A stretch of 64,000 bases of DNA. Source: Hypanus sabinus. Its lineage: Eukaryota. The stretch spans positions 165,230,001 through 165,294,000 of the forward strand of contig NC_082710.1 in assembly GCF_030144855.1 (NCBI RefSeq). Direction: 5' to 3'. Positions within the stretch are counted from its first letter, which is position 1, and every line of letters begins with the position of its first letter. Below are positions 3,372-61,534 of the stretch, piece by piece. The translations under genes were made by a program, and so were the position numbers. The notes under the pieces were generated by a model. It worked only from the letters and a program-made list of their open reading frames with translations, was not told the DNA's origin and did no database searches.

Positions 3372-3385
3372 GTGAAAAAGCGGCA

Positions 3386-6691: not shown

Positions 6692-6748
6692 TTAAGAGAC
6701 TAAGTTTGTACTCTGCTCATTGTGACCTTACGAAGGTCAAGCGGGGAG

Positions 6749-29348: not shown

Positions 29349-29367
29349 CTAAGGGCAATGTACCAAC

Positions 29368-37414: not shown

Positions 37415-40400
37415 GGTTGGGGTGATGACGTAGAGTCGAGCCGTTGGGAATCCAGCTCCCTCGTAAAAAGTCATGAAATAGGGTTTAAATGAAGAGTTAA
37501 CAAATATCTACTAGAAACTATTTATAAGTAACTCAGGATTATCTTTTGATATGGCTCCTAAACCGAAACAGAAGAAAGCTACTACTTCGAAGACTGCGCA
37601 AATCGGCGGGGAAAAAGGCCTAACTTTCCCGGCAAAGTCTCGGACTCAAGTTGGATCTCCTCCCGGCGAAGTGCATGCCAGTTCTGATGATGCGGGACAG
37701 GAAGTTGCAGCAATGTCGGCGGTCTCTAAGAAGAAACGGTAAGAACAACGTATGCGCGAAAGTATGCGTGAACAGGTAAGAACAAAACTCCAAATCCCAG
37801 CTACGGCTGGAAGTGGAATCAGACTCTGGGAAATTCAGAGGAAAAGAAGGAAGAGATTAAAGGAGACATAAAAGATATCCTGAAATATATTGTGAATGAA
37901 TTAAAAGCGATAAGAAGGATGCAGAATAAACTCGATAATGTGGTGGAAAAACAAATGAAGATGGATAATAAAGTTAAAGAGATGGAAGTAAAAGTGGAAG
38001 AAAACACTGAAAGAATAGATAAGATAGAAGATAATAATCTTGCCTGGACAATAGAAAGAAAACGGATGTTGGAAAAAATAGATGCGCTTGAAAATTCTAG
38101 TAGACGAAATAATATCAAAATTGTTGGTCTTATGAAAGGTACAGAGGGAGAAAATCCAATAAAATTCTTTCAAGAATGGATTCCGAAAATGTTGGAAATG
38201 AAAGGAGGAAGCCAAGTAATTGAAATTGAAAGAGCACACAGAGTTTTAAGACCAAGACCTCAACAAGATCAATTTTGATAAAATGTTTAAGGTACCAAGA
38301 TAAAGAAATGATCTTGAAAGGAGCTATTCAAGGTGCTAAAAAGAGAAATGGGCCATTGATAATAGGAGGGAAAAGAGTTTTTTTTTAAATCCGGACATAA
38401 GTTACGATCTTTTGAAGAGGCGGAAGGAATTTAATCCAGTGAAAAAATCTTTATGGGAAAAGGGCTTAAATTTTTATTGAGCTATCCAGCAAAATTGATA
38501 ATTTTCCTGGATAACGAAGAAAGAAGATTTTTCATTGACTACCGGAAAGCGGTGAAATTTGTACAAGAACTACCTTATGTCCATGAAGAGGAGTAAAGAA
38601 TTATAGAAATGAAATGGACTAATGATGAAGACTGAAACAAGTTTGGACTTGACGGACATTTATATAAAAAGAATAGTTGAGTATTTGGAGTAAAGATATT
38701 AATTATTTTCTTTTTTTCTTCTTCACTAATATATTTTCTTTTTTTTTGCGGGGGAGCTGGAAGAGCTGCTGATCGATGGCTGCGAGTTTCGCGTGTACAA
38801 TCATGGCGATTGCCATGACCCGTAAAATGGGGGGGGGGTAATGTTGTGTTCTTTTTATTCGCAACATTAGTGGGGGGGTACTTTTTTTTCTTATATTAGT
38901 TATCTATCTTTTATTTTTCTGTTTTTTGCGTTGGGGAGAAACTCATAGAAACATGGAGAATTTTAAAGAGTTCCCAAGATATTATGAATGATTAATTTAC
39001 TTAATTTTTTAAGTTTTAATGTTAATGGAATTAATGGACCTGTGAAAAGAAAAAGAGTTTTAACATATATTAAGAAAATGAAAGGAGATATAGCTTTTTT
39101 TTTACAAGAAACACATTTAACAGAAACAACATAAGAAATTAAAGAGGGATTGGGTTGGAAATGTCATTGCAGCTTCATTTAATTCAAAATCGAGGAGTTC
39201 CAATTTTGGTTAATAAATCTTTACCAATTAAGATACAAAATGTAATAATTGATTCTGGGGGGAGATATGTGATGATACATTGTCAAATTTTTTCAGAATT
39301 ATGGACTTTTATGAACATTTATGCACCAATTGAAAATGATGCAAAATTCATACAAGAAGTTTTTTTGAACTTGGCTGATGCACATGATAAAATATTAATA
39401 GGTGGAGATTTTAATTTTTATTTAGATCCAGTTTTGGATAGGTCAACTAAAATTGCTATACAATCAAAAGTAATAAAACTAACTTTATCATTAATGAAAG
39501 ATTTAAACCTGATTGATATATGGAGGAAAATTAATCCAAGAGAAAGAGATTATTCATTTTATTCAAATAGACATAAAACTTACTCAAGGATTGATTTTTT
39601 TTATTATCAAAAAATATTCAAGATAGAGTGAAAATTGTGGAATATAAAGCAAGAATACTGTCAGATCATTCCCCCTTGTTAATGACAATGATAATGATGG
39701 ATAAGGAGGAATCGATTTATAGATGGAGATTTAATTCAATTTTATTAAAGTCAAGATTTTTGTGATTTTATGAAAAAACAGATACAATTTTTTTTGGATA
39801 CAAATTTACATTCAGTTGAGGACAAAATTGTATTATGGGAAGCGATGAAAGCATATATAAGGGGTCAGATTACACATTATACATCTAAAATTAAGAAGGA
39901 ATACATGGCAGAAATAGATCAATTGGAAAAAGATATCATAAAGTTAGAAACAGAATATCAAAGATATATGACAGAAGAAAAACAAAGACAACTTGGGGTT
40001 AATAAAAAAACTACAATAATACACTCCAGACATATCGTACAGAAAAAGTAATTATGAGAACTAAACAGAAATATTACGAATTAGGTGAAAGATCACATAA
40101 AATTCTTGCTTGGCAGTTGAAAACACAACAGGCTTCTAAAACAATAAATGCAATTAGAACAAGTGTAAATAAGGTTACTTATAAACCTTTAGAAATTAAT
40201 GAAACTTTAAAAAAAATTGATACTGAACTATATCAATCAGAATCACAAAATAAGATAGCTGAGATAGATAAATTTTTATCACAAATAACCCAAAATTAAA
40301 TTTGGAAGAACAGAAAGGATTAGATATGCCCTTTACATTAAAAGAGGTTGAAGAAGCGTTAGGATCACTTCAGAGTAATAAATCCCCAGGAGAAGATGGT

Positions 40401-42960
40401 TTTCCTCCTGAATTTTATAAAAAAATTTAAAGATTTATTAATTCCTCCTTTTATGGAATTAATATACCAAGTGGAAAGAATGCATAAACTCCCACAATCT
40501 TTTTTAACAGCGATCATAACTGTATTGCCAAAAAAAGATAGAGATCCTTTAAAATAGGCCTATTTCTTTCTTGATTACAGATTATAAAATAATAGCAAAA
40601 AATTTATCTAATAGAATATCTAAATATTTACCAAAATTAATACATATGGATCAAACAGGTTTTATTAAAAACACAATCAATGGATAATATAACCCGGTTA
40701 CTTAGTATAATTCATTTGGCACAAAAAAAGAGAGGAAATGAGTGTGGCAGTTGCTTTGGATGCAGAAAAAGCATTTGCTAGATTGGAATGAGATTTTTTA
40801 TTTAAGGTATTGGAAAAATATGAGTTAGGAAAATCTTTTATACAATGGATTAAAACCTTAAATACTAATCCTTGAGCTAAAGTAGTTACAAATGGTCAGT
40901 TTTTAACACCATTTTGCTTAACTAGGTCAACTAGACAAGGCTGCCCATTATCACCTGCTTTATTTGTATTGGCAATAGAACCATTAGCTGAATTAATTAG
41001 AACAGATTCAGACATTGGGGGCTTTAGAGTTAATCAAGAAGAATATAAGATTAATTTATTTGCTGATGATGTTTTGATTTATTTAACAAACCCATTGCAA
41101 TCTTGGCAAAGATTATCTTTTAGATTGGAAGAATATGGGAAAGTATCAGGGTATAAAGTAAATTGGGATAAAAGTGAAATTTTACCCTTTACTAAAGGAA
41201 ATTATAATCAATGTCAATTAGTAACTCAATTTCGATGGTCAATAAAGGGGATAAAATATTTAGGTATTAGATTTGATAATGATGTAAAAGCTTTATATAA
41301 ACAAAATTATTTGCCATTATTAAAAAAATAAGAGGATCTTGATAAATGGATGTTACCAATAATATTAATAGGTAGAGTTAATGCTGTAAAAATGAATATA
41401 TTTCCTAGATTGCAATATTTATTTCAAACTTTACCAATACAATTACCTCAAGTTTTTTCAAGAACTGAATAAATATGCAAGGAAATTTCTTTGGAAAGGA
41501 AAAATGTCAAGAATATCATTGGAAAAATTGACATGCAAATTTGATTTAGGAGGGTTACAACTTATAAATTTTAAGAATTATTATAAAGCAAATCAACTTA
41601 GATTTATAGCATCTTTTTTTGATGAAGAAAAACCGGCATACATTAGAATAGAATTAGATAAGATAGGAGAAAACATACCAGAAGGTTTTATATATAAATG
41701 GGAATCCAGATGGATAAGGGACAAAAAAGAATCTCCTATATTAAGACACTTGATTGATTTATGGAATAAGGTAAATATGGACGATGAGATAAGGAAATCT
41801 TTATTAGCAAAAAGTACTTTAATTCAAAATAGGCTTATTCCTTTTACAATGGATAATAAACTTTTACATAATTGGTTCCAAAAGGGGATTAAATATATAG
41901 GTGATTGTTTTGAAGGAGGTATATTGATGTCGTTTGATCAATTAAAAAATAAATATAAAATATCAAATAACACTCTTTTCTGTTATTTTCAATTAAAGGC
42001 TTATTTACGAGAAAAGCTGGGTCAAACAATGTTGATGCCAAAATCTAGTGAAATAGAAATATTAATTCAAAAAAGAAAAATTTAAAAAATTATATCTTGT
42101 ATGTATAATTTGATTCAAAAACAGACAATTAAATCAGGAATTCATAAATCAAGACAAAAATGGAAATCTGATTTGAATGTTAAAATTGATGGAAAAAACT
42201 GGTCAAGATTATGTTCTGATAGTATGAGAAATACAATAAATGTTTGTCTTAGATTAATACAATATAATTTTTTACATCAATTATATATAACACCACAGAA
42301 ATTAGATTAAATTCAAATATGTCTGACCAATGTTTTCGATGTAATCAAGAAATTGGTACTTTTTTTACATTCTACTTGGTCTTGTTTTAAAATTCAACCA
42401 TTTTGGATAAATCTAAGACTTTTATTGGAACAAATTACTGGAGTACAACTCCCACATAGTCCAGTATTATTTTTATTAGGAGACATTGAAGGGACAATAC
42501 CGAAACTTAAATTGAATAAGTATCAGAAAAAATTTATAAAAATTGCATTGGCAGTAGCCAAAAAAGTTATCGCAGTTACTTGGAAATCTGATTTATATTT
42601 AACTATGGATTGTTGGAATAATGAAATACATAGTTGTAAACAACTTGAAAAAATTACATACAATCTAAGAAATGAATATGATATATTTTTGAAAATTTGG
42701 CTCCCATACCTACAAAAGATAGGATTAAATACATAGGTCCTTTGAAGATAAAATTATAAAGTAATTGGGGAAAGTAGAAATAAATATTAAAATTATTTTG
42801 AACTCCATGGAGCATGTGGGGATCAACCGATATCCAGGCAATCTTTCTCTTTTTTTTCTTTAGATAAGGGTTAAGGGGGGGGAGGGTCAATATTATTTTT
42901 CTCACTTTTTATCATCACATTTATTCTTTGTAATTTTCTAAAATTTAATAAATAAATATA
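37415..42960 (+). mobile_element. Full-length (~5.5 kb) L1-clade LINE with disrupted ORFs
   Basis: CpG-rich 5' UTR; ORF1 ~37551-38596 (SRRNNIKIVGL, IEIERAHRVL); ORF2 ~38988-42736 (APE GGDFN/YSRIDF, RT INLFADDVLIYL); ~18-bp TSD TTTTTTAAAATTATATCC / TTTTTAAAAATTAGATCC; empty site visible at ~50090-50115. Confidence 0.95.
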
Positions 42961-43825
42961 TTTTTAAAAATTAGATCCTCAAAATGGACTGCCCAGTCCC
43001 CTGTATTTTAGTTTTGTTTTAAGTTAGTTTAGTGGATTTTTTTTTCTTTCTCAATAACAGAAATTTTGAGTCTTTTTTCTATGATAAGAGCTGTGGTTCT
43101 TTTTCTATTAGCTCAGTATTATACTATACATGATTTTGACAGTGTATATTACTTTCTTTGTACTTTGATTGAAATATGTATTTGAGATAATTTCTCCTCT
43201 GACTTGTATCTATTCTTATCTTTTGTAAATCAAAAAAGATCGAAAATGAAGAAAGTAGAACGAAGGCAGAATACAGATTTAATGGCAGGATTCTTATCGG
43301 GTTCAGAATCAGGTTCAGTATCACTGGCATATCACTTAGTACAATGGGATGGGTACAATGCAATACATGATAGTACAGAAAAAATAAATCAATTACAGTG
43401 AACACACACACACACACATACATACTCCTGAATCCCTCCTCTTGCACAAAAAAAGAAACGTAATGGATCAGGCGCACTGACCCCCAAGTCCCCCATCCCT
43501 CCTCCCACAGAAGAAAAAACTCAAAATGGATCAGACACATCGACCTTAAAATCCCACCCCCCTCCCCCTTAAAATTCCCGAGAAGATCCGGTGAAAAAAA
43601 ACTTAGTATAAGATCCATAAGACTAAAAATTCGAGTCTATATTTAGTCCCAAGTCCAAATCCAAAAACAGAAAAAACCTGGAGGTAGTCTCCGCGCCCAG
43701 ACGCAGCAGCAGGCCTTTCAGGTCCAGAGCAGCTGATCAAAAGACAAGCAGCTGGTGCTCACAAATAATTTTTTAAAAAAAGTGAAGTTGTGTTCTTGGA
43801 TTCAATGCCTATTTCAGAATCAGAT

Positions 43826-46230
43826 GGCAGAGGGACCTAACGATTTCAGAACAGACAGCAACGAGACTGAAGCCAGAAGAGTTAGAAATGTACTCACCAA
43901 ATACTTTGACTCATAATTTACTGAATAAATAAGTATACTTTGCCCTGTTTTCTGTCCTTGCTCATATGAAGGTGGTTTACCTATCTATTTATTTATTTAT
44001 TAAAATTTTTAATTAGTTTTTCAAAACATTTTACAAACTAAAAATCCCAAATCCCAATGAGGAACATTAAAACCGTGCAAAATTAAGCATACTTTAACAA
44101 TTTGCTACAAAGAAAGAGAATTTAGCAAATAAAAGCACCTAAATTAAAGACAAGTAAGCTTAGTGTCCTCCCCAAGCCCCACAAGAAGAAACAACAGCAA
44201 CTCCAGACCAACCACAACACAATATAGAGAGTATAAGTCAGGACAGCCAAACTCCCAGACTGTGAATACACTCAGCAACAGAGGATAATAATGCCTTCTA
44301 CCAGAGAAAAAAGGAGCTGAAAGCAAGGCGTTTACCTATTTATGCAAGTACTTCCCTGACAATAGATGTGTAACAGCCTAATGTAACATTGTATGGAAAT
44401 ACAAGATAACGCTGATGCAGACATGTTTTATACATTTAACAAGGTGCTTTATTAATGCAACAGAGTTAGTCAGTTTTTCAATGTTCGTCATCAGTCCCCT
44501 GTATTTTTGTTTTGTTTTAAGTTAGTTTAGTGGATTTTTTTTTCTTTCAATAACAGAAATATTGAGTCTTTTTTTTCTATGATAAGAGGAGCTGTGGTTC
44601 TTTTTCTATTAGCTCAGCATTATACTATACATGATTTTGACAAGATAATTTCCCCACTGACTTGTATCTACCCTTATTTTTTTAAATTAATAAAAAAGAT
44701 TGAAAATGAAGAAAGTGGTATTTGAAGTCAGAATACAGAGTTAATGGCAGGATTCTTATCAGGTCCAGAATCAGGTTCAATATCACTGGCATATGCCATG
44801 AAATTTGTTCACTTAGGGGTGGGTACAATGCAATATATGATAGTATACCAAAAAATAAATCAATTACAGTGAACATATACGTCTAGCCTCCTAAATCGCT
44901 CCTTCTGCACAAAAAAAACAAACAAAATGGGTCAGGTACATTGACCTTCAAATCCCACCCCACTCCCCCTTAAAAATCCCGAGAAGATCAGGCAAAAAAA
45001 AACACATAGTATAAAATCTATAAGACTTAAAAATCAAATCTATATATAGTCCAAAGTTCAAATCCAAAAACACAGGAAAAACCTGGAGGTGGTCTCCGCG
45101 CCCAGACGCAGCAGCCAAACTCCCAGACTGTGAATACACTCAGCAACAGAGGATAATAATGCCTTCTACCAGAAAAAAAAGCTGAAAGCAAGGCGTTTAC
45201 CTATTTATGCAAGTACTTCCCTGACAATAGATGTGTAACAGCCTAATGTAACATTATATGGAAATACAAGATAACGCTGATGTAGACATGTTTTATACAT
45301 TTAACAAGGTGCTTTATTAATGCAACAGAGTTAGTCAGTTTTTCAATGTTCGTCATCAGCCGGATCAATCTGTCCGTGAACTCCCTGTTGGTTGCCGCTG
45401 TACGCTCCAGTATTTGTTTTTTTTAGATTTAAGTTCTCCTGCGCGAGAGCCAACAGTTGTCCTTCTTTTTTGAGTTTTTCTAGTCTGTAACTACACAAAC
45501 GCGCACTTTTACGGTGAGATTTGAAACCAAACATGTCGCTTCTTTTCGGTAGATGAGTCCTGTGCATGCGCAGCAGGAGGAGATTCGCCGAAATCTCCGT
45601 TTCAGTGTGGATAGAGATCTTTTCAAAAACGCATAGTGTGGCCTTCTATCGTTTTAACGCGAAACCGGCGTTTTCAAAATTATCCGGTCTAGTGTGGATG
45701 TAGCCTAAATTTGCCATTGTATCAAGTGTGAGCTGTTGCCGTTCCTAGATATCCGTGTAAGATTACCCTGGGTTTTCCCATTATAACATGCAGTAAAAGG
45801 GGATGTTATATGTTACTTGAGGAAACCGTCCCCATTTGTTTGGGTTGTAGGGAGTGAACCCTCTCCAGACAACATGCTGGTCCCTGTGAATCCTAGACAA
45901 GAGATGTAGGTGTATTAGACATGGGCAATTTCCAAACACCTGCTGCAGCTAGGTAACCGTTAATAACATGAAATAAATCTTCCGGTCTGTAGCCTGCAAT
46001 TCTGAAAGGATGTCTTAAACTGAGTGCACTAGCACCGATGGTTAAGCACATAAATACATTAACATCTACCCTGAAGCTCCAGAGTCCAGTTGCATTACAA
46101 GTTGCAAATGAATAATGTAAAAGTTAAATTTATTTCCGTGAGAATGAGCTCTTTACAGCAGCAGCACAGTACATTACAAACATGGCGTATATAAATTACT
46201 GTTCACAAACATAAATTGATGTAAATTATA
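43826..46230 (+). repeat. Segmental duplication copy 2, left part (Harbinger copy with internal re-duplications)
   Basis: Matches 35272-36420; Harbinger right TIR ends at 45705 followed by TAA; 44490-45112 copies the 42990-43710 block; 45112-45360 recopies 44245-44490. Confidence 0.88.
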
Positions 46231-46659
46231 TGTCAGAAACACACTGAGTCTCAGCAATTTGCAGAACGGTAAACTTTATTTTTCGAGTCTGCAGAGTCGG
46301 ACCCAACCAGCTCCTGCTAGATTGAGTGCCGAATTACACTTTGCACAGTTTTTTATACCCTACTTGTTTACGACTTTGTGAGTTGCACCCATGTGAGGTG
46401 CAGACATTCTTCCTTAATCTCATTACAAAATTACAAATGTGATTACCCTTTGGCCCACTTATCAGCCTCAGCGCATTAACACCGTTATTGTTCAACCGTT
46501 AAGCATGTCTTCCCGTTACCCGTATCGCTTCTTTAATCAGCAAGCTATTGTTTCATCCTGATTTTGCAAATTGGTTTATACATTGCCCTGCAAGTTGCTT
46601 TGCACGTTCTTTCTGTGTCAGCACATTCTAAATGGACTCCTTAAGAATCATTTCTCTCA
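46231..46659 (-). repeat. ERV 3' LTR (429 bp)
   Basis: TGAGAG...CTGACA on minus; preceded by PPT AAAAAGAAAAAGGGTGGAT; followed by TATAA. Confidence 0.97.
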
Positions 46660-46689
46660 ATCCACCCTTTTTCTTTTTAGAATGTGCTA

Positions 46690-47234
46690 TCAGTTGGGCT
46701 TTTGCCACGGGTTTACATAGGCTTCTTCCTCTAGCTCTATTTCCCTTTGTAGGAGTACCTGAACAGGATCAGCTGGGGCCCCTGGTTGCATGACTTGTCT
46801 TGCCACCCGAGCTACTAGCTCCCGCAAGCAGGGGATCAGACATGGTAGCAGAAGGAGGACCATCAATCCCCCTCCTATAACCCCTAAAGAGGTTCGCCAC
46901 CAGCCTCCTTTCAACCATCCGTCCAGCCAGTCCCAATACCCCAGTGGCTTCCAGGTCTGTACGGGCACGTGGGCCAGTTTCCTTATTTTATCTGATATTT
47001 TTTGAACCACCTTTCCGTTGTCATCTATCTTTAAGCAGCAGTTGGTTAGATTAAACTTTCCACATACTCCTCCTTTTTGTTGTAGTCATAACATTTCTCG
47101 TTTACATGCGAGTGTGATACAAAGGACCCTGGAAAAACCGTCATGCCCACCCTTACCGTCGTCCTGCACTTATCACATCCCCCTTCAGCGCTTCTCAACA
47201 ATAGCAGTATATACATTACAGTCCCAAAGTTCAT
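46690..47234 (-). pseudogene. env: ERV env with large internal deletion (signal/SU start joined out of frame to TM C-terminus)
   Basis: ATG overlaps the pol TGA; MNFGTVMYILLLLRSAEG...; second frame [17 protein letters not shown]...[12 protein letters not shown]...TM helix [19 protein letters not shown]. Confidence 0.92.
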
Positions 47235-49620
47235 TCTGTCCGTCTTTTGAGCTTTAGCACCATCGGGTCTTCTCCCTGGACGCAAGTCCATTCTGCACCT
47301 TCTTCGGGCTTTACGGGTCCCTTGATTCTCGCGGCGTGGGTCCACCCTTTTTCTTTTGTCCTTACTGCGGCTTCGGTGGTCAGTAGCACCTGGAATGGGC
47401 CTTCCCACTGCGGCTGTAACTTCTCTGGCTTCCAAGTCTTAATCAGGACCCAGTCACCGGGCTGAGTTCGGTGGAGTGTGAAGTCCAGAGGTGGGGTTTG
47501 TGCGAGTAACCCCTTCCTGCGCAATTCTGCAAAAGAACGAGACAGTGCCTGTAAATAGTCCCTTACAAAGACATCTCCCCCTTGCAGGGAAGGATAGCCC
47601 TCCACCTTGTTCCAATATGGAAGGCCAAACAACATTTCATAAGGGGATACTCCTATATCTTTTCGAGGAGCCGTGCGGATTCTTAGTAGGGCCAGGGGTA
47701 GACACTTAGTCCAGGGTAGCTTGGTTTCCATCATTAGTTTTGTCAATTGCGTCTTCAAAGTACTGTTCATCCTCTCAACTCTTCCTGAGCTCTGAGGGTG
47801 CCAGGGGGTGTGCAGCTTCCACTGGATTCCTAAGGCGTCACAGATTAGCTGGTGTGTTTTTGAGGCAAAGTGTGTTCCCCTATCTGAATCAATAGACCCC
47901 ATTATTCCATATCTCGGGACTATATTTTCTAATAGGATCCGTGCCACTGTAGGGGCGTCCGCTTTAGTGGTTGGGAATGCTTCCACCCACCGAGTGAAGT
48001 GATCCACAATTACTAACAGGTACTTCCATCTCTGAACTTGTGGTAGTTCCGTAAAGTCTATTTGGATCCGATGGAACGGTCGGACGGCTAGTGTTTGTCC
48101 CCCCTTATGGGTGGCACGCATCATTTTCTTGTTTACCTTTTGGCAGGTGTAACAGCCCCACACCTCCTGTTGAGCTAGTGTGAATATCCCTTTCCAAACA
48201 TAGTCCCTTAGGATAGTGTCGCACATAGCTTGCACTCCCCAATGGCTTTGTTGGTGTAGTTGTTGCAGTATATGACGAGTTACTTCCTTATTCAGTACTT
48301 GCCGTCCGTCGGGGGTCTTCCACTCGCCTTCTGATGTTTGTCGGGCTCCCAGCTGGCTCATAGCGTCTATTTCTACTTGGGTGAAGACTGGTAGTTTGTT
48401 AAGCCCTTCCCTTATTGGTATCAGGGTTAGAAGTCGGACCGTTTTTTCCATTGCTGCCCGCTTGGCTTCTTCATCTGCGAGCCGGTTTCCTATTGCTTCC
48501 GGGGCTGTTCCTCGTTGATGTCCTGGAACGTGAACCACTGCAATTTCTTGAGGTAGTGTTAGAGCTTCCAGAGTCATGCTTATCATTTGTTCGTGAGCTA
48601 ATTCCCTTCCCCTGGCTGTTATCAACCCCCGTTCTTTCCAAATCTTTCCGAAGGTGTGTACCACTCCATAGGCATACTTAGAATCGGTGTATATAGTGCC
48701 TATTTTGTTTCTTAACAGTTGCAGTCCCCTCTGCAAAGCATATAGTTCACAAGACTGGGCTGACCAATTACCCGGGAGCCGGCCGGACTCCACCGTCTCC
48801 CTAGTCCTCCCGTTTATAATAGCATATCCACTGTGTCGTACCCCATTGATGCATCTGGAGGAGCCGTCGATATATAGTTCCTCGCCTTCAATTAGGGGAA
48901 CTTCTTGTAGATCTTCCCTACTTTTTGTCTGAAGGTCTGTTAGCTCCACGCAGTTATGCTCGGTTTCCTCCCCTGTTGATTCCCCGTATAAGAACTGTGC
49001 CGGGTTACAACTATTGTTCTTTTCAAAGCTTAAATCATCCCCGACCATCAGAATGGTTTCGTATTTCAGTATGCGAGAGTCCGTCAACCACCGCTGAGCT
49101 TTTTGGGCTAAGAGGGTGCTAACGGAGTGCGGGGTATACACCGTCATTCTTCCCCCAAAGGTTAATTTCCGTGCTTCTTCTACTAGTACGGCTGCTGCCG
49201 CTACGGCTTGTATGCACGTCGGCCATCCCCGGGATACCGGGTCTAACATTTTTGATAAAAAGGCCACAGGTTGCCGCTTTCCTCCTTTTTCTTGGGTTAG
49301 TACTCCTAACGCAGTTCCTTCATTGTTTGTTGCATACAGCTGAAAGGGCTTTTCCAGTGCTGGCAGTGTTAATACCGGGGCCCGAATTAGTTGCCCTTTT
49401 ATTTTCCTGAACTTCTGTTCTTCTTCTTCGGTCCAGCTGATTATTCCCCGGTCTTCCTTTGCCAATTTGTCATACATAAACTTCACCAGGGAGGTATAAT
49501 TCTCTATCCAAATCCGGCAATAGCCCACTAAGCCCAGAAATTGTCTTATTTCCTTCTTTGTCCTGGGAAGCGGTAGTTTAGTTATTCCCGCTATTCTTTC
49601 TGGGGTTATTTGGCGGTGAT
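47231..49620 (-). CDS. pol: ERV pol, 5'-truncated but stop-free: RT thumb/connection, RNase H, integrase
   Basis: RQFLGLVGYCRIW; RNase H LYIDGSS/SAQSCEL/YTDSKY/GNRLAD; IN HQQSH...CYTC, IQIDFT, IDSDRG, SSGRVERMN, WEGPF; RT palm, PR and gag absent. Confidence 0.96.
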
Positions 49621-51440
49621 TTTATACTATGTGTTTTTTTTGCCTGATCTTCTCGGGATTTTTAAGGGGGAGTGGGGTGGGATTTGAAGGTCAATGTACC
49701 TGACCCATTGATTTATTTTTTGGTATACTATCATATATTGCATTGTACCCACCCCTAAGTGAACAAATTTCATGGCATATGCCAGTGATATTGAACCTGA
49801 TTCTGGACCTGATAAGAATCCTGCCATTAACTCTGTATTCTGACTTCAAATACCACTTTCTTCATTTTCAATCTTTTTTATTAATTTAAAAAAATAAGGG
49901 TAGATACAAGTCAGTGGGGAAATTATCTTGTCAAAATCATGTATAGTATAATACTGAGCTAATAGAAAAAGAACCACAGCTCCTCTTATCATAGAAAAAA
50001 AAGACTCAATATTTCTGTTATTGAGAACGAAAAAAAAATCCACTAAACTAACTTAAAACAAAACAAAAATACAGGGGACTGGGCAGTCCATTTTGAGGAT
50101 ATAATTTAAAAAAAAGGAAAAATCCTTCTGGTCAAATCTAAAACTTCACAGAGAGGAAAAAAAGATTACCTAGAAAAGTCAAAAAAAATTAGATCATATG
50201 AAAATTTTGAATCAAAGGTCACCAGGTTTGCTCAAATTTAAAAGATGTACCAAACATCCAACTTCTAATTTTCTCCAAACTTAAACACGACATGATAGAG
50301 GGGAGCCAGAAAAATAAAACAGTAGGTGAATTGGGATCCTTCCAATACAACAAAATAGCTCTCCTAGCCAATAAAGTTGAAAAAGCTATCATGCGTTGAG
50401 TGGAAGCAGGAACATTTCCCTCGTCCTTTGGAGTAATCCCAAGGATTGCTGTAAATGAATTAGGTCCAAACCTATGACTTCTGATAACGTTCTGAAAGCA
50501 TCTCTCCAAAAGTTATTTAACTTTATACAGGACCAAAACATATGAGTTAAGGTAGCCACCTCAGTGTTGCATCTATCACAGGTGGGATTTATATTAGAAA
50601 AAATATGCACTAATTTATAAGATAAATTAGTTCCACTTTCTAAAGTGTTATCACTTAGCATTTTTCCAGATTGCACTCTATTGGCTATTTCTTAGCCCAA
50701 GTTTCTGCATCTTATCAATGTCCTAGTTTAAACTGTAGCTGCTCAGCCAATTCTCTGTTTCCTACCAATGTCCTGTTGAAACCGACAGCAACCTTTTTTG
50801 TTATCCACAACAGCAGTCAATTTTATGTCATGTGCAAACTTACTAATCACCCTTCCACTCCCTCATCTATGTCGTAAAAATCACTGTGGCTAAGAGTCCC
50901 AGAACAGACCCCTGTGCATCACTACTTGTCATTGACCTTTGGTGTTTCACTGGGTATTTTCCATCTACTGCCACCCTCTTCGTTCTGTGGGCAAGTCATT
51001 TCTGACTCCACATAGCCAATGTTCCTTGGATCCTTGAATCTTCAGAGTTCCTGAATGAGCTTTGTCAAATGCTTTACCAAAATCCATATACATGACATCC
51101 AATCTGCTACTTTTATCAAAGTGTTCTGTCCCTTCCTTGAAGAATTGTCTGCCCTTTACAAATCCATGCTGACTAATCATGATCAAACCATCTCTTCCAA
51201 ATGCTAATAAATTCTGTCTCTAAGAATCTTCTCCAACAGTTTGTCCAACACTGATATAAGATCACGGGTCCATAATTCCTAAAAATTATCCTTATTACCT
51301 TTCTTAAACAAAGGAAAAACATTTACCACCCTCCAATACCCATCCCTATTCTTGATAGGCCTGTAAGTCCCTAAATCTGTGTCTCAATTTGCACTAACAT
51401 CATTTTGTTATTTTTATTGCGTCATATAATTTATGTATAA
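49618..51440 (-). repeat. Segmental duplication copy 2, right part (inverted)
   Basis: Reverse complement of 36420-37414 joined without the L1 to the 42975/44490-type block; keeps ~370 bp of old L1 ORF2 end that copy 1 has lost. Confidence 0.92.
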
Positions 51441-51869
51441 TGAGAGAAATGATTCTTAAGGAGTCCATTTAGAATGTGCTGACACAGAAAGAACGTGCAA
51501 AGCAACTTGCAGGGCAACGTATAAACCAATTTGCAAAATCAGGATGAAACAATAGCTTGCTGATTAAAGAAGCGATATGGGTAACGGGAAGACATGCTTA
51601 ACGGTTGAACAATAACGGTGTTAATGCGCTGAGGCTGATAAGTGGGCCAAAGGGTAATCACATTTGTAATTTTGTAATGAGATTAAGGAAGAATGTCTGC
51701 ACCTCACATGGGTGCAACTCACAAAGTCGTAAACAAGTAGGGTATAAAAAACTGTGCAAAGTGTAATTTGGCACTCAATCTAGCAGGAGCTGGTTGGGTC
51801 CGACTCTGCAGACTCGAAAAATAAAGTTTACCGTTCTGCAAATTGCTGAGACTCAGTGTGTTTCTGACA
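51441..51869 (+). repeat. ERV 5' LTR (429 bp), inverted relative to the provirus body
   Basis: Reverse complement of 46231-46659 with 3 substitutions; TATAAAA 51743, AATAAA 51820; preceded by TATAA. Confidence 0.97.
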
Positions 51870-51872
51870 ACG

Positions 51873-51890
51873 TGGGGGCTCGTCCGGGAT
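51873..51890 (+). promoter_or_regulatory. Primer-binding site for tRNA-Pro
   Basis: TGGGGGCTCGTCCGGGAT, identical to the 18-nt MLV-type PBS-Pro. Confidence 0.95.
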
Positions 51891-52074
51891 CCACACTCCG
51901 GCCGCGGTGGACACGAGGAAGGACATTGGAGACGGTGCACCCCGCCGAGTTTGGCGGTCCCTGACTCCTTGCTCGTCGCTCCAACGCGGCTTGAGCGAGT
52001 GATATCCGGACAGCGCAGAGCGGTAAACGGGGAGAAGGGGACAGTACCTGGTACTGGAAGTCCCCAGGACGCAC

Positions 52075-52083
52075 CGGGTAAGT
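52075..52083 (+). promoter_or_regulatory. Probable retroviral major splice donor in ERV leader
   Basis: CGG/GTAAGT ~190 nt after the PBS; leader ends at ~52097 where CR1 sequence starts. Confidence 0.6.
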
Positions 52084-52097
52084 GCCTTGGTGTATCG

Positions 52098-53270
52098 GCC
52101 TTCATTATTTGGGCAAGTAGAGTTGCAGGAGAATGGGAACCAGAGTGCCAGAACACTTGGCAGAGAGGTTGTGGAGGCAAATGTTGATAAGACCTCAGGC
52201 AAATTTAGGAATCAAATGTTTGAGCATGGTGTGACTATGTCCTGATCAGTATATATTTCAAGTACTGTCAAAGGAAAGGCAGGTAATAGAATTGAAGATG
52301 AGGTAACCAGTTTACAAACAGAGGGAATGTGTGCTGAGGCGAAGCTGTTGATCGGGCAAAATAACAGACAACAGGATGAGTTGCAACATAAAGGGCAGAC
52401 AAAATGGAAAAGCTCAGACAAAGTTAGGAATCAAAAAAGGTGGAGCATGGTGCCACAAAAATGAAAAGGGTGAACATGGAACTGAAGATATTGTATCTGA
52501 ATGCACACAGTATCCAGTATAAAAATGAAAAGGGTGAACATGGAACTGAAGATATTGTATCTAAATGCACACAGTATCCAGTATAAAGTAGCTGAACTTG
52601 CAGCACATGTGCAGATTGACAAGTATGATGTTGTAGGCATCACGGAATCCTGGCTGAAGGATTATAGCTGGGTGTTTAATGTCCAAGGATACACATTGTA
52701 TCAAAAGAATAGTCAAGAAGGCAGAGGGGGTGGCATTGCTCTGTTGGTAAAAAAAAGTTGTCTCAAATATTAGAACGAGGTGACATAGGGTCGGAATTGT
52801 TGAATCATTGTGGATAAATCTAAGGAACTAAAAGGGTAAAAAGACCCTGTTGAAAGTTGCATAAAGACCCCCAGACAGTAATAACCAAAGAGAGGGCATT
52901 TAATAGACCAAGATTAGTGGGAATTTAGAGGATTGGAAAGCTTTTAAATACCAACAGAAGGCAAGTAAAAAAGTCATTGAGAAGGTAAAGGTGAAATATG
53001 AAAGTAAGCAGAAAGTAATATTAAAGAGGAGACCAAAAGATTCCTCAGATACATAACGTGTAAAAGAGAGGCAAGAGTAGAAATTGGACGGCTGAAAAAC
53101 GATGCGGGAGAGGTAGTAATGGGGGCAATGAAATAGCAGGCAAACAATAAATATTTTGCATCAGTCTTCACTGTAGAAGACCCTAGCAGTGTGGTGGAAG
53201 TTCCAGGTGCCAGGGGGCATGAATGTGTAAAGATACCACAACCAGAGAGAAGTTTCTTGAGATTTGTGTG
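52098..53270 (+). mobile_element. CR1 fragment (APE region) with 64-bp tandem duplication at 52457-52584
   Basis: ILYLNAHSI...DVVGITESWL; duplicated AAAAATGAAAAGGGTGAACATGG unit. Confidence 0.85.
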
Positions 53271-53636
53271 TTTTTTACACATTTCGATCATAAAACGGTT
53301 AAGGTTTTCTCGCTTAATCGCGTGAGATCCCAGTCTCACTGTCCCAGTTAGGCACCGAGGGTGCTTACAGAAAGTCTCCCCACCACCCCCGATCTGCAAC
53401 GGCAAACGTGGCTCAGGGAAAGGAATAAAGAAACTATTCTTCACAAGATATGGACTGGTTTAAAAGAACTGGACAGAAAAAGGCTGCGCGAAGTAATCGA
53501 GATTAAACTCGAAACCAAAGCAAAGCCAGAATCAGAAGCACTTATTTCAGCTTCCTGCGTTGATGTCAGCGTGTAGCCCCTCCACCACCTCCTCTCCCCC
53601 CCACCACCCCTTCACTAGCTTAAGGCGTGAACCCAC

Positions 53637-53706
53637 CTCTCGAATTGCACAACAGCAGGCAAATAAACGCGCTGCCGGAGATGATCCACGAACTTCTGTT
53701 CAACAT
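53637..53706 (-). CDS. CD2/SLAM-family receptor exon 1 (signal peptide MLNRSSWIISGSAFICLLLCNSR)
   Basis: ATG, hydrophobic core and phase-1 donor GAG/GTGGGT in a CpG-rich non-repeat island; splices in frame to exon 2 (NSR-VLAES). Confidence 0.8.
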
Positions 53707-53719
53707 GTCTTCTGTGAAA

Positions 53720-53830
53720 CTAAGACTGACATTTAAATGTCGTGTTGTTAACCCGCTGAGGTGGGACGGATGAACATCGAGAGGCGGGGAAACGGAAAGC
53801 AGGTACGACGAAGCTGGCTCTTGTCACAAC
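53720..53830 (-). promoter_or_regulatory. Proximal promoter: GC box beside ISRE/ETS-like GGAAACGGAAAGC
   Basis: GAGGCGGGG 53781-53789 and GAAACGGAAA 53789-53798 (GAAANNGAAA), 75-90 bp upstream of the ATG. Confidence 0.5.
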
Positions 53831-53990
53831 ACGCTGGAGGAATTCAGCAAGTCGGGCAGAATCCGTGAAAACGAACAGGGTGTTGTGCGTATTGCTTTGA
53901 CCCCAGCATCTGCAGAGTATCTTGTGTTTACCAAGCCAGCTGTTCACTGCAGGATCCTATCAGTCGCCGTCCTTTGTACCTGTACCTCTA

Positions 53991-55866
53991 CAGGGGTGTC
54001 AAACTCAAATACACAGTGGGCCAAAATTAAAAAATCGGTACAAGTCGAGGGCCGGACTGGTTCAGCGTTTATGGCAAAACTTATTGAAATGAATTTACCA
54101 CACATATTAACATGGAACTAACAAAGCTTAGGTTATTGCCTACAAAAACAACATTGACCATTAAATAAATAAAAAATCAGTTGCATTTATTTCTTATGGC
54201 TTTATCTGCAGCTTTTCCGGAGTAATTTCTAATGAAAACATTTTTCCACAGGCCAACACTCTGTGATTCACACTAGTCTAAGCCAGATACTTGGCATCTC
54301 ATCTTGGATGCAAGTTCATCAATGTTTGGAGTCAGGCTCTGAGCTGAGGAAATCCTCAGAATTGAGTGAAGGTGTTCATCAAAACATCCTGTGTGATGTT
54401 TATCTTCATCAAAGAGAACAGTTGTTCACACAGATATGTGCTGCCAAACATAGAGAGCATTTGAGCAGCTTGGGTACGCAGCTGGGGCATTGTGTCGGGA
54501 ATGAAACGTAGAAACTGTGCAGCGCCCACCGAGTCATACTTTGCCTTGAGTGTGTCACTACATTGGAGTTCAATCAGCTCCATTTGTATGTTGGTTGGTT
54601 GGTGCGCTTTCAAACCTGCTTTTTTGGGCTTCAAATTGGCAAATCGCCGGGTGAAGTCGGCACCAAGTATGCTAAGTTTTTCAGCAAACTTTGCATGTGG
54701 GAACACTGCGGTAGAAACCTGCTCTTTCATAGTTTGGCAACACGGAAAATGGCGTAAGTTTTCTTGCTGCATCTGCGTCTCCCACGGGCGCAGCTTGGTT
54801 TTAAAAGCCCTCACTGCAGCGTACATGTCTGTGATCACACGACCCCGCTCCTGAAGCTGCAAGTTGAGCGCATTGAGATGGCTCGTGATGTCACACAGAA
54901 ACGCCATTTCACAAAGCAACTTTTTATCCCGGAGCTCTGTTGTGTCTTTCCCTTTGCTTTCCATGAACTGACAGATCTCCTCACGCAACTCAAAACATCT
55001 TTTCAGCACTTTTCCTTGGCTTAACCATCACACCTCTGTGTGATAGGGCAAATCATTATATTCTGAACCCAACTCCAGAAACGACTTGAACTCGCGATGA
55101 TTTAAACCTTTGGCTCTTATGAAGTTAACTGCTCGTGTTATGGTGCTCATTGTATGTTCCATTTTCAAGGCTTTGCCACACAACGATTCCTGGTGTATGA
55201 TGCAGTGATAAGCTGTCAGCTCACCTGCGCCGTTTACCTCCCGCATCTTCTCCCGGATCCTGCCCACCAATCCACTCTTTTGACCGCACATCGCGGCTTC
55301 TGTTTCTTGTCCAGATGCTTGTATTTGTCGTGGTGTTTCGTTTCATAGTGTCGTCTTACGTTATATTCTTTAATTACAGCCACACCGTCTCCGCACACAA
55401 GACAAACAGGTTTGCCCTTTATATCTGCGAACATATACTCTGCCTCCCACCTGCTTTGAAAACCCCTGTTTTCGAAGTCCACCTTTCGTTCAGCCATTTT
55501 TGGGGTGAGGGATCGCTGAAAGTTGACCACACGTGACTAGCGCCATAAGGATGCTGATGAGAGAGTAAGGCAAGCGCGAACAATGCACTGGCAGTGCATT
55601 GTGGGATTTGTAGTATTAGTGTGCATGCAATATACCGGCGGGCCAGCTCTAATAGAAAAAAAATTCATTAATGATATTCAGGAATTAAACCAGGGAAACC
55701 GAATAAACACTAAAAACCCTGAAAACCTGGTACCTGAATAAACTCAGCATTAGCCATATCATACGCCATAGGCGCTTCGATTACTGGGGCCAGCTTTAAT
55801 AGTAATTAGACATTATCTCGCGGGCCAAAGATAATTCCACCGCGGGCCTTGAGTTTGACATATGTG
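53991..55866 (-). mobile_element. hAT (SPIN/GTF2IRD2-like) transposon with deleted, frameshifted transposase
   Basis: TIRs CAGGGGTGTCAAACTCA / TGAGTTTGACATATGTG; KPVCLVCG...[33 protein letters not shown]; deletion at ~55297; CTCTA on both flanks (partial TSD). Confidence 0.92.
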
Positions 55867-56299
55867 CTCTACAACTTAATTTTCCTCCCATTTCTCACGG
55901 CAAGTTAACCTACCGCGGTACTGACTATAGACAATGCAATACAATGTAGTAGTCTAGTTTCAACCCTCCAGGTTGGAACAGACACTGTCTGCTCTTTATT
56001 TGCATTTCAATTGTATCAACTTCTGCAGGTCACTCCTTATCTGGGTGGTGCTCCATCTTGCGGAGTGGAATCAGAATCAGCTTTAATATCACTGGAATAT
56101 ATCATAGAATTTGTTGTTTTGTGGCAGCAGTAATCACTTAAAATGATAAATTACAATAAAAAATCTATAGGCAAATAAATAAGTAGTGCAAAAGAGAGTA
56201 AAAAAGAAAATAAAATGAGGTAGTGTAAATGGGATTATTGTCCACGGTGGAGGAGAAGAAGCTGTTCCTGAAACATTCAGTTGGTGTCACCTTTCACTT

Positions 56300-57430: not shown

Positions 57431-60214
57431 TACCTCTTCCTTTTTGGTAGAAATGAGAGGAGGGCATGTCCTGTGTGATGGGGGTCATTAAAGCTGCCTT
57501 CATGAGGCATTGCCTTTTGAAGGTGTTCTTGATGGTGGGGAGGCTAGTGGGAAACATCCGTCTTTGTTTCAGTATACATCCCTAGGGACAGCCCATTAAA
57601 CAAGTCCCTTGTTAGGTGATGGATTGGGATAAACCTCAGCCAAAGCCACTTCATCTCTTTATATCCCTCATTAGTGGATACGTGGCCCAGGAAAGAAATG
57701 GATAATCATTTCAATCCAAGCACAACCATCTCAATAGAAGTGCTTAATGGTACTGAGTGACTATACACGACAGTGAAGGCTGCACACTGATATTTTTAGT
57801 TCATTTCATTTTAAAGTGATGAGCTCTTTCAATGTGAAACTTGTCTGTGATATCCCACTCTGACCAAATCATGGTACTCACCAAGATGCTGTAAGCTGTG
57901 CCTGCAGGGAATGGATTCCCTTCGACTAATGCAGGCAAACATCCCGCATATAAAAGTGGCCAAAGATTAAATGACCAAAGAATATTCTGAGTACAGAAAT
58001 CAATTCTGCCAATTCATGGTTGAGCAATCTTGTTCTGATACCCAACGTCGTGTCCAATATTAGGATCCCATGGACATTATTGGTAAGTTTAGTGCAGCTG
58101 TTTACACACAATGCAGTGACTTGCAAGATCAGTGTGGTCAGTACATTATGTTGAATGTGTAATGGCTGATAAATGGTGAAACCACTGACCGCACAGCTAG
58201 TTGTCAAAAATCATGAATAATTTGGACAACAAAATGTTGTTCAACATTGTATTTAAATTACAAATGAAGAAATAAAGAAAATAAGTCGAAGTGTACTAAT
58301 CCCTCCCATCTCATCTCCTGTATTGTAGTCAATGAAGGAGCAGGTTGCCAAGTGGAATTAATGAAAAAGGTGTTAGAAGACATTCACAGTTCTTGTGCTC
58401 ACACATGGTACAAGCTCGGATGATTCTTAAAATTCAAAAACTGCCAGTAGTTCCAGGGTTTCTATGTTCCTGCTGCACAGACCGAGTCCCAGAACATGAT
58501 GTGAATGCCTGCAGCCCTGTGCCCGGAACTTCAAAATCAGCTGCTTTACAATGGCGTATAAAATAGGGTCGATGCTGGGAAACTGAGATAAAATCAGACT
58601 GTTGTGGATATAGTCAGCAGGCCTATGCAGGATCTGTGGGGGCATAGTGAGGCTGAAATTGGAAGGTCAATTTTGCGATCATGGTCAGATTTGATGGAAA
58701 GACTTTTACCTGAATCATTAACAATGTTCTTCACTGCACAGATACTTCTTTGTATGTGGGCATCTGCTGCATCTTTTGCGTTTACTGTCTCTCACCTCGT
58801 TGCTTGGCTCCTTAACATTGTCATAGCTGGAGGAGGTAGAGGGCATAAGCTCCTACTATTAAATATTCCCAATGACGTGCACCTCAAACAGCCTCTAACA
58901 ACCTTGTCGAACTCCTGACCTTCATGTGTGGCTTTGCTACTAAGCCATCAGAACCATATCTACTGATAGGAGAAGGGGCAGGTGGGTTACTGGCAACTTA
59001 AAACCAGTCGCTTCGGGCCGATAGTGTTTGTCAGCCATTGCTGGCAGGTTATCAAGTTGCAGGAAAACTCTGATCTCAAACCTCTGCTACACCCACTCAC
59101 TTGGAACCCGAAACCAGTCCTTTGTTGAGTTAGACCATAAGACCATAAGACAGAGGAGCAGGATTCAGGAATTTGGCCCAACGAGTTTGCTCCACCATTC
59201 AATCATGGCTGATCCTTTTATTTTCTCTTTCTCAACCCCATTTCTCGGCCTTCTCCCCATAATCTTTGATGCCATGTCCAATCAAGAACCTACCAATCTC
59301 TGCCTTAAGTAAACCCAACGACCTGGCCTCCACAGTTGCATGTGGAAACAAACTCCACAAATTCACCACCGTCTGGCTAAAAAAGTTTCTCTGTATCTGT
59401 TTTGAATGGACATCCCTCTATCCTGAGGCTGTGCCCTCTTGTCCTAGACTCTTCCACCATGGGAAACATCCTTTTCACATCTGCTCTGTCTAGGCCTTTC
59501 AACATCCCCCATCATCCTTCTAAATTCCAGCTTGTATGGACCCAGAGCCATCAAACGTTCTTCATATGATAACCCTTTCATTCCTGGAATCTTGTGTACC
59601 TCCTCTGGACCCTCTCCAATGCCAACACATCTCTTCTAAGGTGACGGGCCCAAAACTGTTCACAATACTCAAGGTGAGTCCTCAGCATTGCCTTATAAAG
59701 CCTCAGCATTACAACCTTGTCTTTGTGTTCCAGACATCTTAAAATGAATGTTAACATGGCATTTGCCTTCCTCACCACTGACTCAACCTGTAAGTTAACC
59801 TTTAGGGTATTCTGTGCAAACACTGCCAAGTCCCTTTGCATCTCTGATTTTTGGATTTTATGCACATTTAGAAAATAGTCTGCACATTCATTTCTACCAC
59901 CAAAGTGCATAACCATGCATTTTCCAACATTATATTTCATTTGCCATTTTCTTGCCCATTCCCCTAACCTGTTTATATCCTTCTACGTCCTACCTGTTTC
60001 TTCAACACAACCTGTCTCTCCATCAATCTTTGCAACATCCACTGCATCCCCTTTATCTATCCTACTTGTGACATCCTCAAAGAATTCCAATAGGTTTGTC
60101 AGGCAGAATTTTCCCTTAAGGAAACCATGTTGACTTCATCCTATCTTGTCCTCCATCACCTCAGCCTTAACAATTGACTCAACCATCTTCCCAGTCATTG
60201 AGGTCAGGCTAACC

Positions 60215-60529
60215 TTTTTAGGCATTCGTTAGTCTCGTAAGATCATGGATTTGCGCCTTGGAAGGTTTCCAGGGTGCAGGCCCGGGAAGGGTTATATGGG
60301 AGACCAGCAGTTCCACAAGCTACAAGCCTTCCCATCTCCACACCACCAATTTTGTTCAAGGGAAGGGCACTAGGACCCAAGCAACTTGGCACTAGTGTCA
60401 TCGCAGAGAAATGAGTTGTTAAGTGCCTTGCTCAAGGACACAACACGCTGCCCCAGCTGTGGCTCGAACCAGTGACCTTCAAATCACTAGACCGATGCCT
60501 TATCCACTAGGCCACGCACCAACACAACT
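60215..60529 (-). mobile_element. tRNA-derived SINE with 8-bp TSD GGCTAACC
   Basis: Minus A box TGGCCTAGTGG, B box GGTTCGAGCC, core GTGTCCTTGAGCAAGGCACTTAAC; GGCTAACC at 60207 and 60530. Confidence 0.85.
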
Positions 60530-61534
60530 GGCTAACCATTGAGGTCTATAATTTCCTTTCTGCTGCCCTCCTCCTTTCTTAAAGAGTTGAGTTACATTTG
60601 CAATTTTTCAGTCCTCTGGCACCATGATTTTTGAAAGATCATTACTAGTACCTCCACAGCCTCTACTGCTACCTCTTTCAGAACAGTAGGGTGCAGTTCA
60701 TCTGGTTCAGGAGACTAATGTACCTTTAGGTCTTTCAGCTTTTTCAACACATTCTCCCTTGTAATAGTAACTACACCCACTTCTCTTCCTTCACTCACGA
60801 CAACATCTGGCACACTGCTAGTGTCTTCCAGACTGAAGACTGATTCAAAATACTCATTTAGTTCATCTGCCATCTCCTTGTCCCCCATTATTATTTCTTC
60901 TGCCTCATTTTCTAACGGTCCTATATCCACTCTCAGCTCTCTTTAATTTTTTTATATACTTGAAAAAATGTTTACTATCTATTTTAATATTATTTGTTAG
61001 CTTGCTTTCATATTTCATCTTTTCCTTTCTAATGATTCTATTAGTGTTCTCTGTAGGTTTTTATAAACTTCCCAATCCTCTATCTTCCCACTAATTTTTG
61101 CTTTGTTGTAACTCTCTTTTTTTTTACATTAGCTTTGACTTCCCTTGTCAGCCACAGTTGCACAATTTTGCCATTTGAGTATTTCTTCATTTTTGGAATA
61201 CATATGTCCTGCACCTTCTTAATTTTTCTCAGAAATGTGCGCCATTGCTGCTCTGCTGACATCCCTGCAAGCAGCTCCTTTTAATTTAATTTGGCCAACT
61301 CCTCTCTTGTACCACTGTAATTTCCCTTACTCCACGGAAATACTGCTACATCCAACTTTACTTTCTCCCTTTCAAATTTCAAGTTGAACTCAATCATATT
61401 GTGATCACTGGTTCCCAAGGGTTATTTTAGCTTGAGCTCCCTAATCAGTTCCACTTGATTACATAACACCCAATACAGTATAGTTGATCCCCCAAGTAGG
61501 TTCAAAGACAGGAACCTACTTGATTAGATTCGAT

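Follow-up and report, generated by a model that had tools for sequence, protein, structure and literature searches.

An endogenous retrovirus with oppositely oriented long terminal repeats in the Atlantic stingray genome: a single integration and its later rearrangement

How a provirus can come to carry its two long terminal repeats (LTRs) in opposite orientations is the question raised by an endogenous retrovirus (ERV) in the genome of the Atlantic stingray, Hypanus sabinus. The ERV lies in a 64,000-nt stretch of contig NC_082710.1 (assembly GCF_030144855.1, positions 165,230,001 to 165,294,000 of the forward strand), which was analyzed as a whole and is referred to here as the window; all positions are counted from its first nucleotide. 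An original prediction, made from the letters of the window, had read the locus as one provirus split by an inversion. The present analysis examined whether both LTRs derive from one integration, what was reversed and lost afterwards, and which histories fit the resulting structure.

A single integration into a duplicated host locus

A repeat search of the window found two inverted-repeat arms of 429 nt each that were 99% complementary (Table 1), and a base-by-base comparison of the two identified three differences and no indels, all three being C/T transitions in CpG context. Both arms start with TG and end with CA. An 18-nt primer binding site (PBS) starts 3 nt past the plus-strand arm, and an 18-nt polypurine tract (PPT) adjoins the minus-strand arm upstream, with one base (46660) between. 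The TG...CA ends, the PBS that follows the plus copy and the PPT that precedes the minus copy identify the plus copy as the 5' LTR and the minus copy as the 3' LTR, and these inverted LTRs lie 4781 nt apart. The letters of the PBS are identical to those printed as the tRNA-Pro primer site of a murine leukaemia virus (PMC1769482), and the site is accordingly worded here as a predicted tRNA-Pro type. No tRNA genes and no Rfam families were found around the provirus locus.

The pentamer TATAA abuts the outer end of each LTR when it is read in the LTR's own orientation (51436-51440, and the reverse complement of 46226-46230). A target-site duplication of 5 bp was the only length that fitted both LTR ends, as lengths of 4 and 6 bp failed. 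A 4-bp duplication was ruled out by the LTR flanks, and a paralogous copy of the host site confirmed 5 bp.

This paralogous copy belongs to an older tandem duplication of host DNA, in which unit A carries the uninserted site and unit B carries the provirus. The unit A sequence 35273-37414 has its counterparts in 43835-46233, with the same orientation, and in 51440-50097, with the opposite one, so that flank L, on the 3' LTR side (45195-46233), is colinear with the paralog and flank R, on the 5' LTR side (51440-50097), is reversed relative to it. Unit A was 91.6% identical to 45195-46233 with gapped columns included (95.4% for the piece 35847-36411 alone) and 95% identical to the reversed 51440-50578, and the substitution divergence between the two units was 3.8-5.5%. 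In order to rebuild the site before integration, 60 nt of flank L were joined to the reverse complement of 60 nt of flank R and one copy of the duplicate was removed, which gave a string of 115 nt made of host DNA only. The rejoined flanks aligned ungapped to 36363-36477 of the paralog with an identity of 106/115, across a single TTATA at 36418-36422. The empty site used as reference is thus paralogous and lies within the window; it is neither an ortholog nor an allele of the occupied site.

Because the rejoined flanks match the empty site without a gap, they were adjacent when the virus integrated, and the shared 5-bp duplication together with the exactly rejoining flanks shows a single integration event. 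A recent date for this integration is supported by the LTRs, which are 0.7% apart compared with 3.8-5.5% between the host paralogs.

Two other sources of the LTR pair were considered and rejected. Two independent insertions were ruled out by the shared 5-bp duplication and the rejoining flanks, and recombination between two different proviruses was ruled out since the duplications are identical and the flanks rejoin.

Much of the original prediction was borne out by these results. It had placed pol, the PPT and the 3' LTR on the minus strand and the 5' LTR, PBS and leader on the plus strand, and the TG/CA ends, PBS, PPT and pol homology were all found in the expected places. The three CpG transitions in 429 positions, the same TATAA at both outer LTR ends, the rejoining of the flanks into an empty site near 36420 and the single recent integration that it had proposed were likewise recovered. 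The LTRs, for which it had considered separate insertions with different duplications, carry identical ones.

Reversal of one host flank and loss of viral and host DNA

The course of the rearrangement could be followed by means of a host segment, X, of which the window holds three copies: X1 in unit A, X2 as an extra copy in flank L, and X3, the copy belonging to unit B, which is reversed and abuts the pol fragment. X1 was 76-84% identical overall to X2 and X3, with several indels, and up to 93-94% identical over the first ~150-190 nt. Next to the pol fragment lies the reversed X3, and the reversed flank R comes after it, which corresponds to the order of flank R followed by X in unit A, if a 5.5-kb block private to unit A is ignored. 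The junction between pol and X3 was fixed to within 3 nt by two independent alignments. The inverted segment, as read from these alignments, runs from inside X to inside the leader. A large inversion extending past the window was ruled out, as X3 is found next to pol and its normal place is 1.3 kb from the target site.

Both viral and host DNA are missing from the locus. No gag, protease or reverse transcriptase (RT) palm homology was found anywhere in the window at E<=1, and tblastn with sister and related proteins gave only the known pol and env pieces. X3 ends ~97 nt before the end common to X1 and X2, and neither this missing ~97-nt tail of X nor the spacer that follows X1 was found past the leader or elsewhere in the window by sensitive blastn and 13-mer matching. 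Since X3 is truncated and the X tail does not follow the leader, the loss at the leader-side junction took in host as well as viral DNA. A further deletion, of 64 nt and private to X3, is flanked by AAT/AAT and lies ~90 nt from the pol junction.

One integration followed by a non-homologous inversion and a deletion is the history that we consider likely. A gammaretrovirus-like ERV would have integrated once, in minus orientation, at TTATA in unit B of the older tandem host duplication, with the 5-bp duplication being made at that time. An inversion that broke the DNA once in pol and once in X would then have reversed X3, flank R, the 5' LTR, the PBS and the leader. One deletion, simultaneous with the inversion or later than it, would have spanned the new right-hand junction and removed what was left of the leader, gag, protease, the RT fingers and palm, the X tail (at least its last ~97 nt) and further host DNA. 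The single integration, the reversed flank, the missing genes and the truncation of X are shown by the sequence; how many steps there were and in what order, the joining of broken ends as their mechanism and the exact leader-side junction are what we infer.

Several points weigh against this two-step history. The leader-side junction was placed by a collapse of CpG content, not by homology: there are 23 CpG in the 228 nt up to 52096 and 2 in the next 359 nt, composition being the sole basis of this bound, and the sequence that follows (52098-52456) is unique in the window. The structure is known from assembled sequence alone. Furthermore, flank L contains a second rearrangement that is equally young and has microhomology at its junctions, which suggests that the history may exceed two simple steps of breakage and rejoining.

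The dependence on an assembly, together with the duplicated and repeat-rich nature of the region, also bears on the possibility that the provirus is colinear in the animal and that a piece of the contig was misoriented within the tandem duplication. Such an artefact appears very unlikely, as the window is free of gaps (it contains no N) and as misorientation would leave unexplained the absence of the gag-RT part from 64 kb, the tight fusion of a truncated X3 to pol and the missing X tail. In addition, the whole structure measures less than 6 kb, and typical long reads exceed this length.

The second rearrangement consists of X2, a 617-nt extra copy of segment X located 1.2 kb beyond the 3' LTR, and of a 251-nt direct duplication that brackets it, the two copies of which are termed A and A' here (A-X2-A'; Table 1). 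The junction of A with X2 has a microhomology of 3 nt (CAG), and that of X2 with A' one of 4 nt (CAGC). X2 shares with X3 all of the indels that separate them from X1, which indicates that X2 was copied from the X of unit B, and it keeps the tail that X3 lost, which indicates that the copying took place before or during the truncation. The divergence was 0.81% between A and A', 0.43% between X2 and X3, and 0.70% between the LTRs. These values correspond to 2-3 substitutions each and are indistinguishable, and A-X2-A' appears, by this measure, as young as the LTR pair. The junction microhomologies and the 64-nt deletion in X3 are marks of microhomology-mediated, perhaps replicative, repair. The data do not separate one event from several in an unstable region.

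A 341-nt insertion private to unit B (43989-44329) was also observed in flank L. A 14-nt direct repeat (1 mismatch), corresponding to 35413-35426 of unit A, lies on either side of it, and it looks like the insertion of a non-LTR retroelement. The 251-nt duplication of A and A' starts inside this insertion.

Alternatively, the whole structure might have been made at once by one event of the fork stalling and template switching/microhomology-mediated break-induced replication (FoSTeS/MMBIR) type. The switching path would have led from A to X, back to the start of A and on through flank L, the 3' LTR, env and pol; it would then have changed to the opposite strand inside X and returned through flank R, the 5' LTR and the leader to distal host DNA. 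A single path of this kind would yield A-X2-A', the reversed segment and both losses. It would be in keeping with the microhomologies of 3 and 4 nt, with the presence inside a 251-nt duplication of a 617-nt templated copy of a segment that was once ~11 kb away, with the X tail retained in X2, with the extra deletion close to the X3 junction and with the indistinguishable divergences of the three pairs. However, the similar ages rest on so few substitutions that simultaneity does not follow from them, the microhomology at the pol/X3 junction amounts to 0-3 nt, and the same data are explained by separate events in an unstable, tandemly duplicated region. We therefore regard a single switching event, the main alternative, as unlikely.

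The two-step history, in which inversion and deletion follow integration, leaves two nearly identical LTRs in opposite orientations, and their geometry raises the possibility of further change. Recombination between the LTRs would flip 46660-51440 and delete nothing. The flipped isomer would show flank L, one LTR and flank R in succession and would mimic a solo LTR with intact duplications. The original prediction had held that inverted LTRs cannot collapse to a solo LTR; this is correct in that direct-repeat recombination is impossible between them, and it overlooked that recombination would still flip the 4.8-kb interval.

The same geometry could be used to reverse the order of events. A solo-like LTR would then have stood at the original site, with a fragment made of pol, env, LTR and leader 1.8 kb away in the opposite orientation, and recombination between the inverted LTRs (429 nt, 99.3% identical) could have interconverted the two forms. 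This origin is extremely improbable, since it calls for a larger number of events (an integration, the formation of a solo LTR, the capture of another fragment and a flip) and still requires a host deletion at the leader junction; its variant with two independent insertions is excluded, as both LTRs carry one and the same 5-bp duplication and the flanks rejoin exactly. A bolder combination, in which the provirus, its flank and A-X2-A' would be the footprint of one template-switching event with at least 4 switches on a fresh provirus and in which the inverted LTRs would serve as a flip-flop that maintains both isomers of the 4.8-kb interval side by side in the population, seems to us quite doubtful.

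With regard to the rearrangement itself, the original prediction fared less evenly. Its proposal that host flank, 5' LTR and leader were reversed after integration agrees with the colinear flank L and the reversed flank R. The breakpoints that it gave, ~49620 and ~52097, agree with the bounds of the parts, within 3 nt on the pol side and by composition only on the leader side. It had assumed a clean flip that lost viral DNA only; gag, protease and the RT palm were indeed lost, and the ~97-nt X tail shows that host DNA was lost too. The picture of a single inversion was incomplete, as the equally young A-X2-A' had been missed, and a complex event or a series of events has to be considered in its place.

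Table 1. Features of the provirus locus and of the host units around it (positions in the window)
Feature	Position	Strand	Remarks
Host unit A, paralogous, with uninserted ("empty") target site	35273-37414	+	single TTATA 36418-36422
Host segment X1 (unit A copy)	42961-43710	+	end of tandem unit; next unit starts 43835
Host flank L of unit B, ancestral orientation	43835-46230	+	ends in duplicate copy TTATA 46226-46230
A-X2-A', young local rearrangement	44244-45359	+	251-nt direct duplication 44244-44494 (A) / 45112-45359 (A') brackets X2 (44492-45115)
3' LTR	46231-46659	-	429 nt; TG...CA ends
Polypurine tract	46661-46678	-	upstream of 3' LTR, one base (46660) between
env remnant	46693-47291	-	one large internal deletion and frame change; ~385 of ~590 codons missing
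pol fragment: RT thumb/connection, RNase H, integrase with MLV-type C-terminal domain	47234-49621	-	796 codons, no stop or frameshift
Host segment X3 (unit B copy), reversed, abuts pol fragment	49618-50114	-	without last ~97 nt of X; private 64-nt deletion
Host flank R of unit B, reversed relative to unit A	50097-51440	-	LTR-side end is duplicate copy TATAA 51436-51440
5' LTR	51441-51869	+	429 nt; TATA-like motif 51743-51750; AATAAA 51820-51825
Leader fragment	51870-52097	+	GC 64%; CpG observed/expected 1.0; downstream bound approximate; last CpG 52096
Primer binding site, predicted tRNA-Pro type	51873-51890	+	letters match PMC1769482

Identity and coding content of the element

The pol frame is open from the X3 junction to its natural stop, and its Pfam domains were RT_RNaseH_2, RNase_H, Integrase_H2C2, rve and MLVIN_C. 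The nearest solved structures were the "Reverse transcriptase/ribonuclease H p80" chains 4mh8, 4hkq and 5dmq (E ~1e-88), which we take to be RTs of the murine leukaemia virus (MLV)/xenotropic MLV-related virus (XMRV) type. The matches begin only at about residue 255-288 of the RT chains, from which it follows that the RT fingers and palm are missing from the pol of the window.

Four proteins of Hypanus sabinus (P0043, P0122, P0123 and P0125) were 98-99.5% identical to this pol, other rays and skates reached 66-79%, and birds and reptiles about 50-55%; among non-NCBI matches in the protein-database search none exceeded 65% identity. No database record was found for the pol product of the window itself. 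Judged from these identities, the ERV family is young and multi-copy. The window pol was 98.6% identical to residues 482-1274 of P0125 and starts just past the Pfam RVT_1 region of that protein, and residues 1-481 of P0125 (gag and RT palm) had no tblastn match in the 64-kb window at E<=1.

The sister copy P0125 (XP_059823509) is a single frame of 1274 aa, with the last half of RVT_1 following immediately on Gag_p30, and it is without nucleocapsid, protease and the RT N-terminus. As this copy is itself joined in such a manner, internally deleted copies seem to be common in the family. A Gag p30-type capsid is present in P0125 and absent from the window because that part was lost.

Both an N-terminal and a C-terminal remnant of env were identified. 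The N-terminal ~80 codons were 96% identical to the sister protein P0126. P0127, a relative of 593 aa, matched both env remnants, and only its residues 9-82 and 469-535 found counterparts in the window, in different frames. The C-terminal remnant scored 20 bits against TLV_coat, which is below the cut-off of 22.5, whereas P0127 passed TLV_coat at 46 bits. The original prediction had listed env on the minus strand without qualification; a remnant is present there, and the entry was overstated in that these two ends are all that is left of the gene.

The lesions of the coding region therefore comprise an N-terminal truncation as the only lesion of pol, one internal deletion with a frame change in env, and the complete absence of gag and protease. 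The primer site, pol, the integrase tail and the gag and env of relatives assign the element to the gammaretrovirus-like (class I) ERVs. To judge from its reading frames, the provirus cannot express gag-pro-pol or env. The inversion, which had been put forward as the disabling lesion, is not the sole one, as env carries its large internal deletion; the predicted outcome is a dead provirus that was disabled by the env deletion as well.

A second, exact copy of 17 nt of the PPT was observed at 47341-47357 on the minus strand (blastn E=0.009), in the integrase-coding end of pol, where ~50 nt separate it from the env start downstream. A central polypurine tract and a chance match within purine-rich coding DNA are both conceivable.

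Relation to known systems and other features of the window

An inversion of LTRs after integration has been described for HERV-K124, a human-specific locus of the human endogenous retrovirus HERV-K with LTRs inverted relative to its 5' LTR, for which inversion and template switching were invoked and LTR inversion was called rare (PMC3625200). Both HERV-K124 and the stingray locus have oppositely oriented LTRs that result from a rearrangement after integration. HERV-K124 differs in being betaretrovirus-like, human and partly deleted, with three LTRs and a mechanism that was left unresolved, whereas the stingray locus has two full LTRs with the original duplication on both, and a paralogous empty site fixes its ancestral order.

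Target-site duplications are a standard test of LTR pairing. Hughes and Coffin, in Nature Genetics in 2001, reportedly used them to tell whether two LTRs share one integration, the cases described being recombination between proviruses, with mismatched duplications. The same logic applies here, and leads to the opposite outcome in that the two duplications agree, the rearrangement being non-homologous and confined to a single provirus with its flank.

Complex structural variants of the human genome have been attributed to FoSTeS/MMBIR, that is, to replicative template switching. The stingray locus shares with such variants its microhomology junctions, a nearby templated insertion, and a duplication, an inversion and deletions in cis. 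It differs from them in that a single-event origin is argued here from similar divergences (0.4-0.8%) alone.

In solo-LTR formation, as in the stingray case, the host genome removes the coding capacity of a provirus. Solo-LTR formation depends on direct repeats, and all that lies between these is removed, whereas the stingray LTRs are inverted, both were kept and 3 kb of pol-env survives. The locus illustrates that a provirus can be inactivated by a route distinct from both solo-LTR formation and point decay.

With the MLV-type class I ERVs, the stingray element shares a tRNA-Pro PBS, RT and RNase H nearest to MLV/XMRV structures and an MLVIN_C tail, and Gag_p30 occurs in its sister copy and a TLV_coat-type envelope in its relatives. 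It is distinguished by its host, a batoid fish, and by a pol that is ~50-55% identical to those of birds and reptiles and 66-79% identical to those of other rays and skates. MLV has a target-site duplication of 4 bp, a length that is typical and does not define the class, and two bases between LTR and PBS; the stingray element has a duplication of 5 bp and three bases (51870-51872) between the CA of the LTR and the PBS. By analogy, the 5-bp duplication and the 3-base spacing suggest that integrase end-processing and spacing may be unlike those of MLV. A full-text literature search returned no paper on stingray ERVs of this kind, a result that speaks only weakly for the absence of such papers.

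The locus carries its own control, as the paralogous empty site in the same window proves the single integration and fixes the ancestral order; the later rearrangement can therefore be read with unusual certainty. It also documents a young ERV family, with protein copies 98-99.5% identical, in a batoid genome. A caution for ERV censuses arises as well, since a pipeline restricted to LTR pairs in direct orientation would count the locus as two unrelated fragments. In other respects the locus is a clean but ordinary example of the disabling of a provirus, being one structural variant in one genome, with no function implied.

Within the host units, the block between flank R and X1 that occurs only in unit A (37415-42960, 5.5 kb) is AT-rich (GC 27-30%). 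It showed no internal or external repeats, and its two longest open reading frames (ORFs; 39155-39631 and 41504-42085) had no Pfam match; it represents either an insertion in unit A or a deletion in unit B. Conversely, 358 nt of the reversed flank R (50220-50577) have no counterpart in unit A, where they would fall between 37287 and 37293, and occur nowhere else in the window.

A second young LTR element was found at 2699-7423, with LTRs of 675 nt (2699-3373 and 6749-7423) that were 99.7% identical. Its ORF of 1093 codons (3410-6691) contains DUF1759 and DUF5641, domains that are presumably typical of BEL/Pao elements. Neither an RT nor a protease domain was detected in this ORF, the sole ORF of the element that was scanned, and the element is probably internally deleted.

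An older repeat family, with 70-83% identity among its copies, occurs at 165-857, 26254-29354, 52502-53193 and 59135-63180. It gave a weak RVT_1 match at 28196-28768 and is probably a long interspersed nuclear element (LINE). One LINE-like fragment lies 0.4 kb beyond the leader junction, and a 64-nt unit is present twice in tandem at its start (52457-52587), with 98% identity between the copies.

Finally, a 3-kb block at 53000-56000 had a CpG observed/expected ratio of 0.6-0.8, compared with 0.15-0.35 around it. A stop-free piece on the minus strand of this block (55237-55536) matched the Spin-doc zinc finger PF18658 (E=5e-11), and the block could be a young transposon-derived gene or a CpG island.

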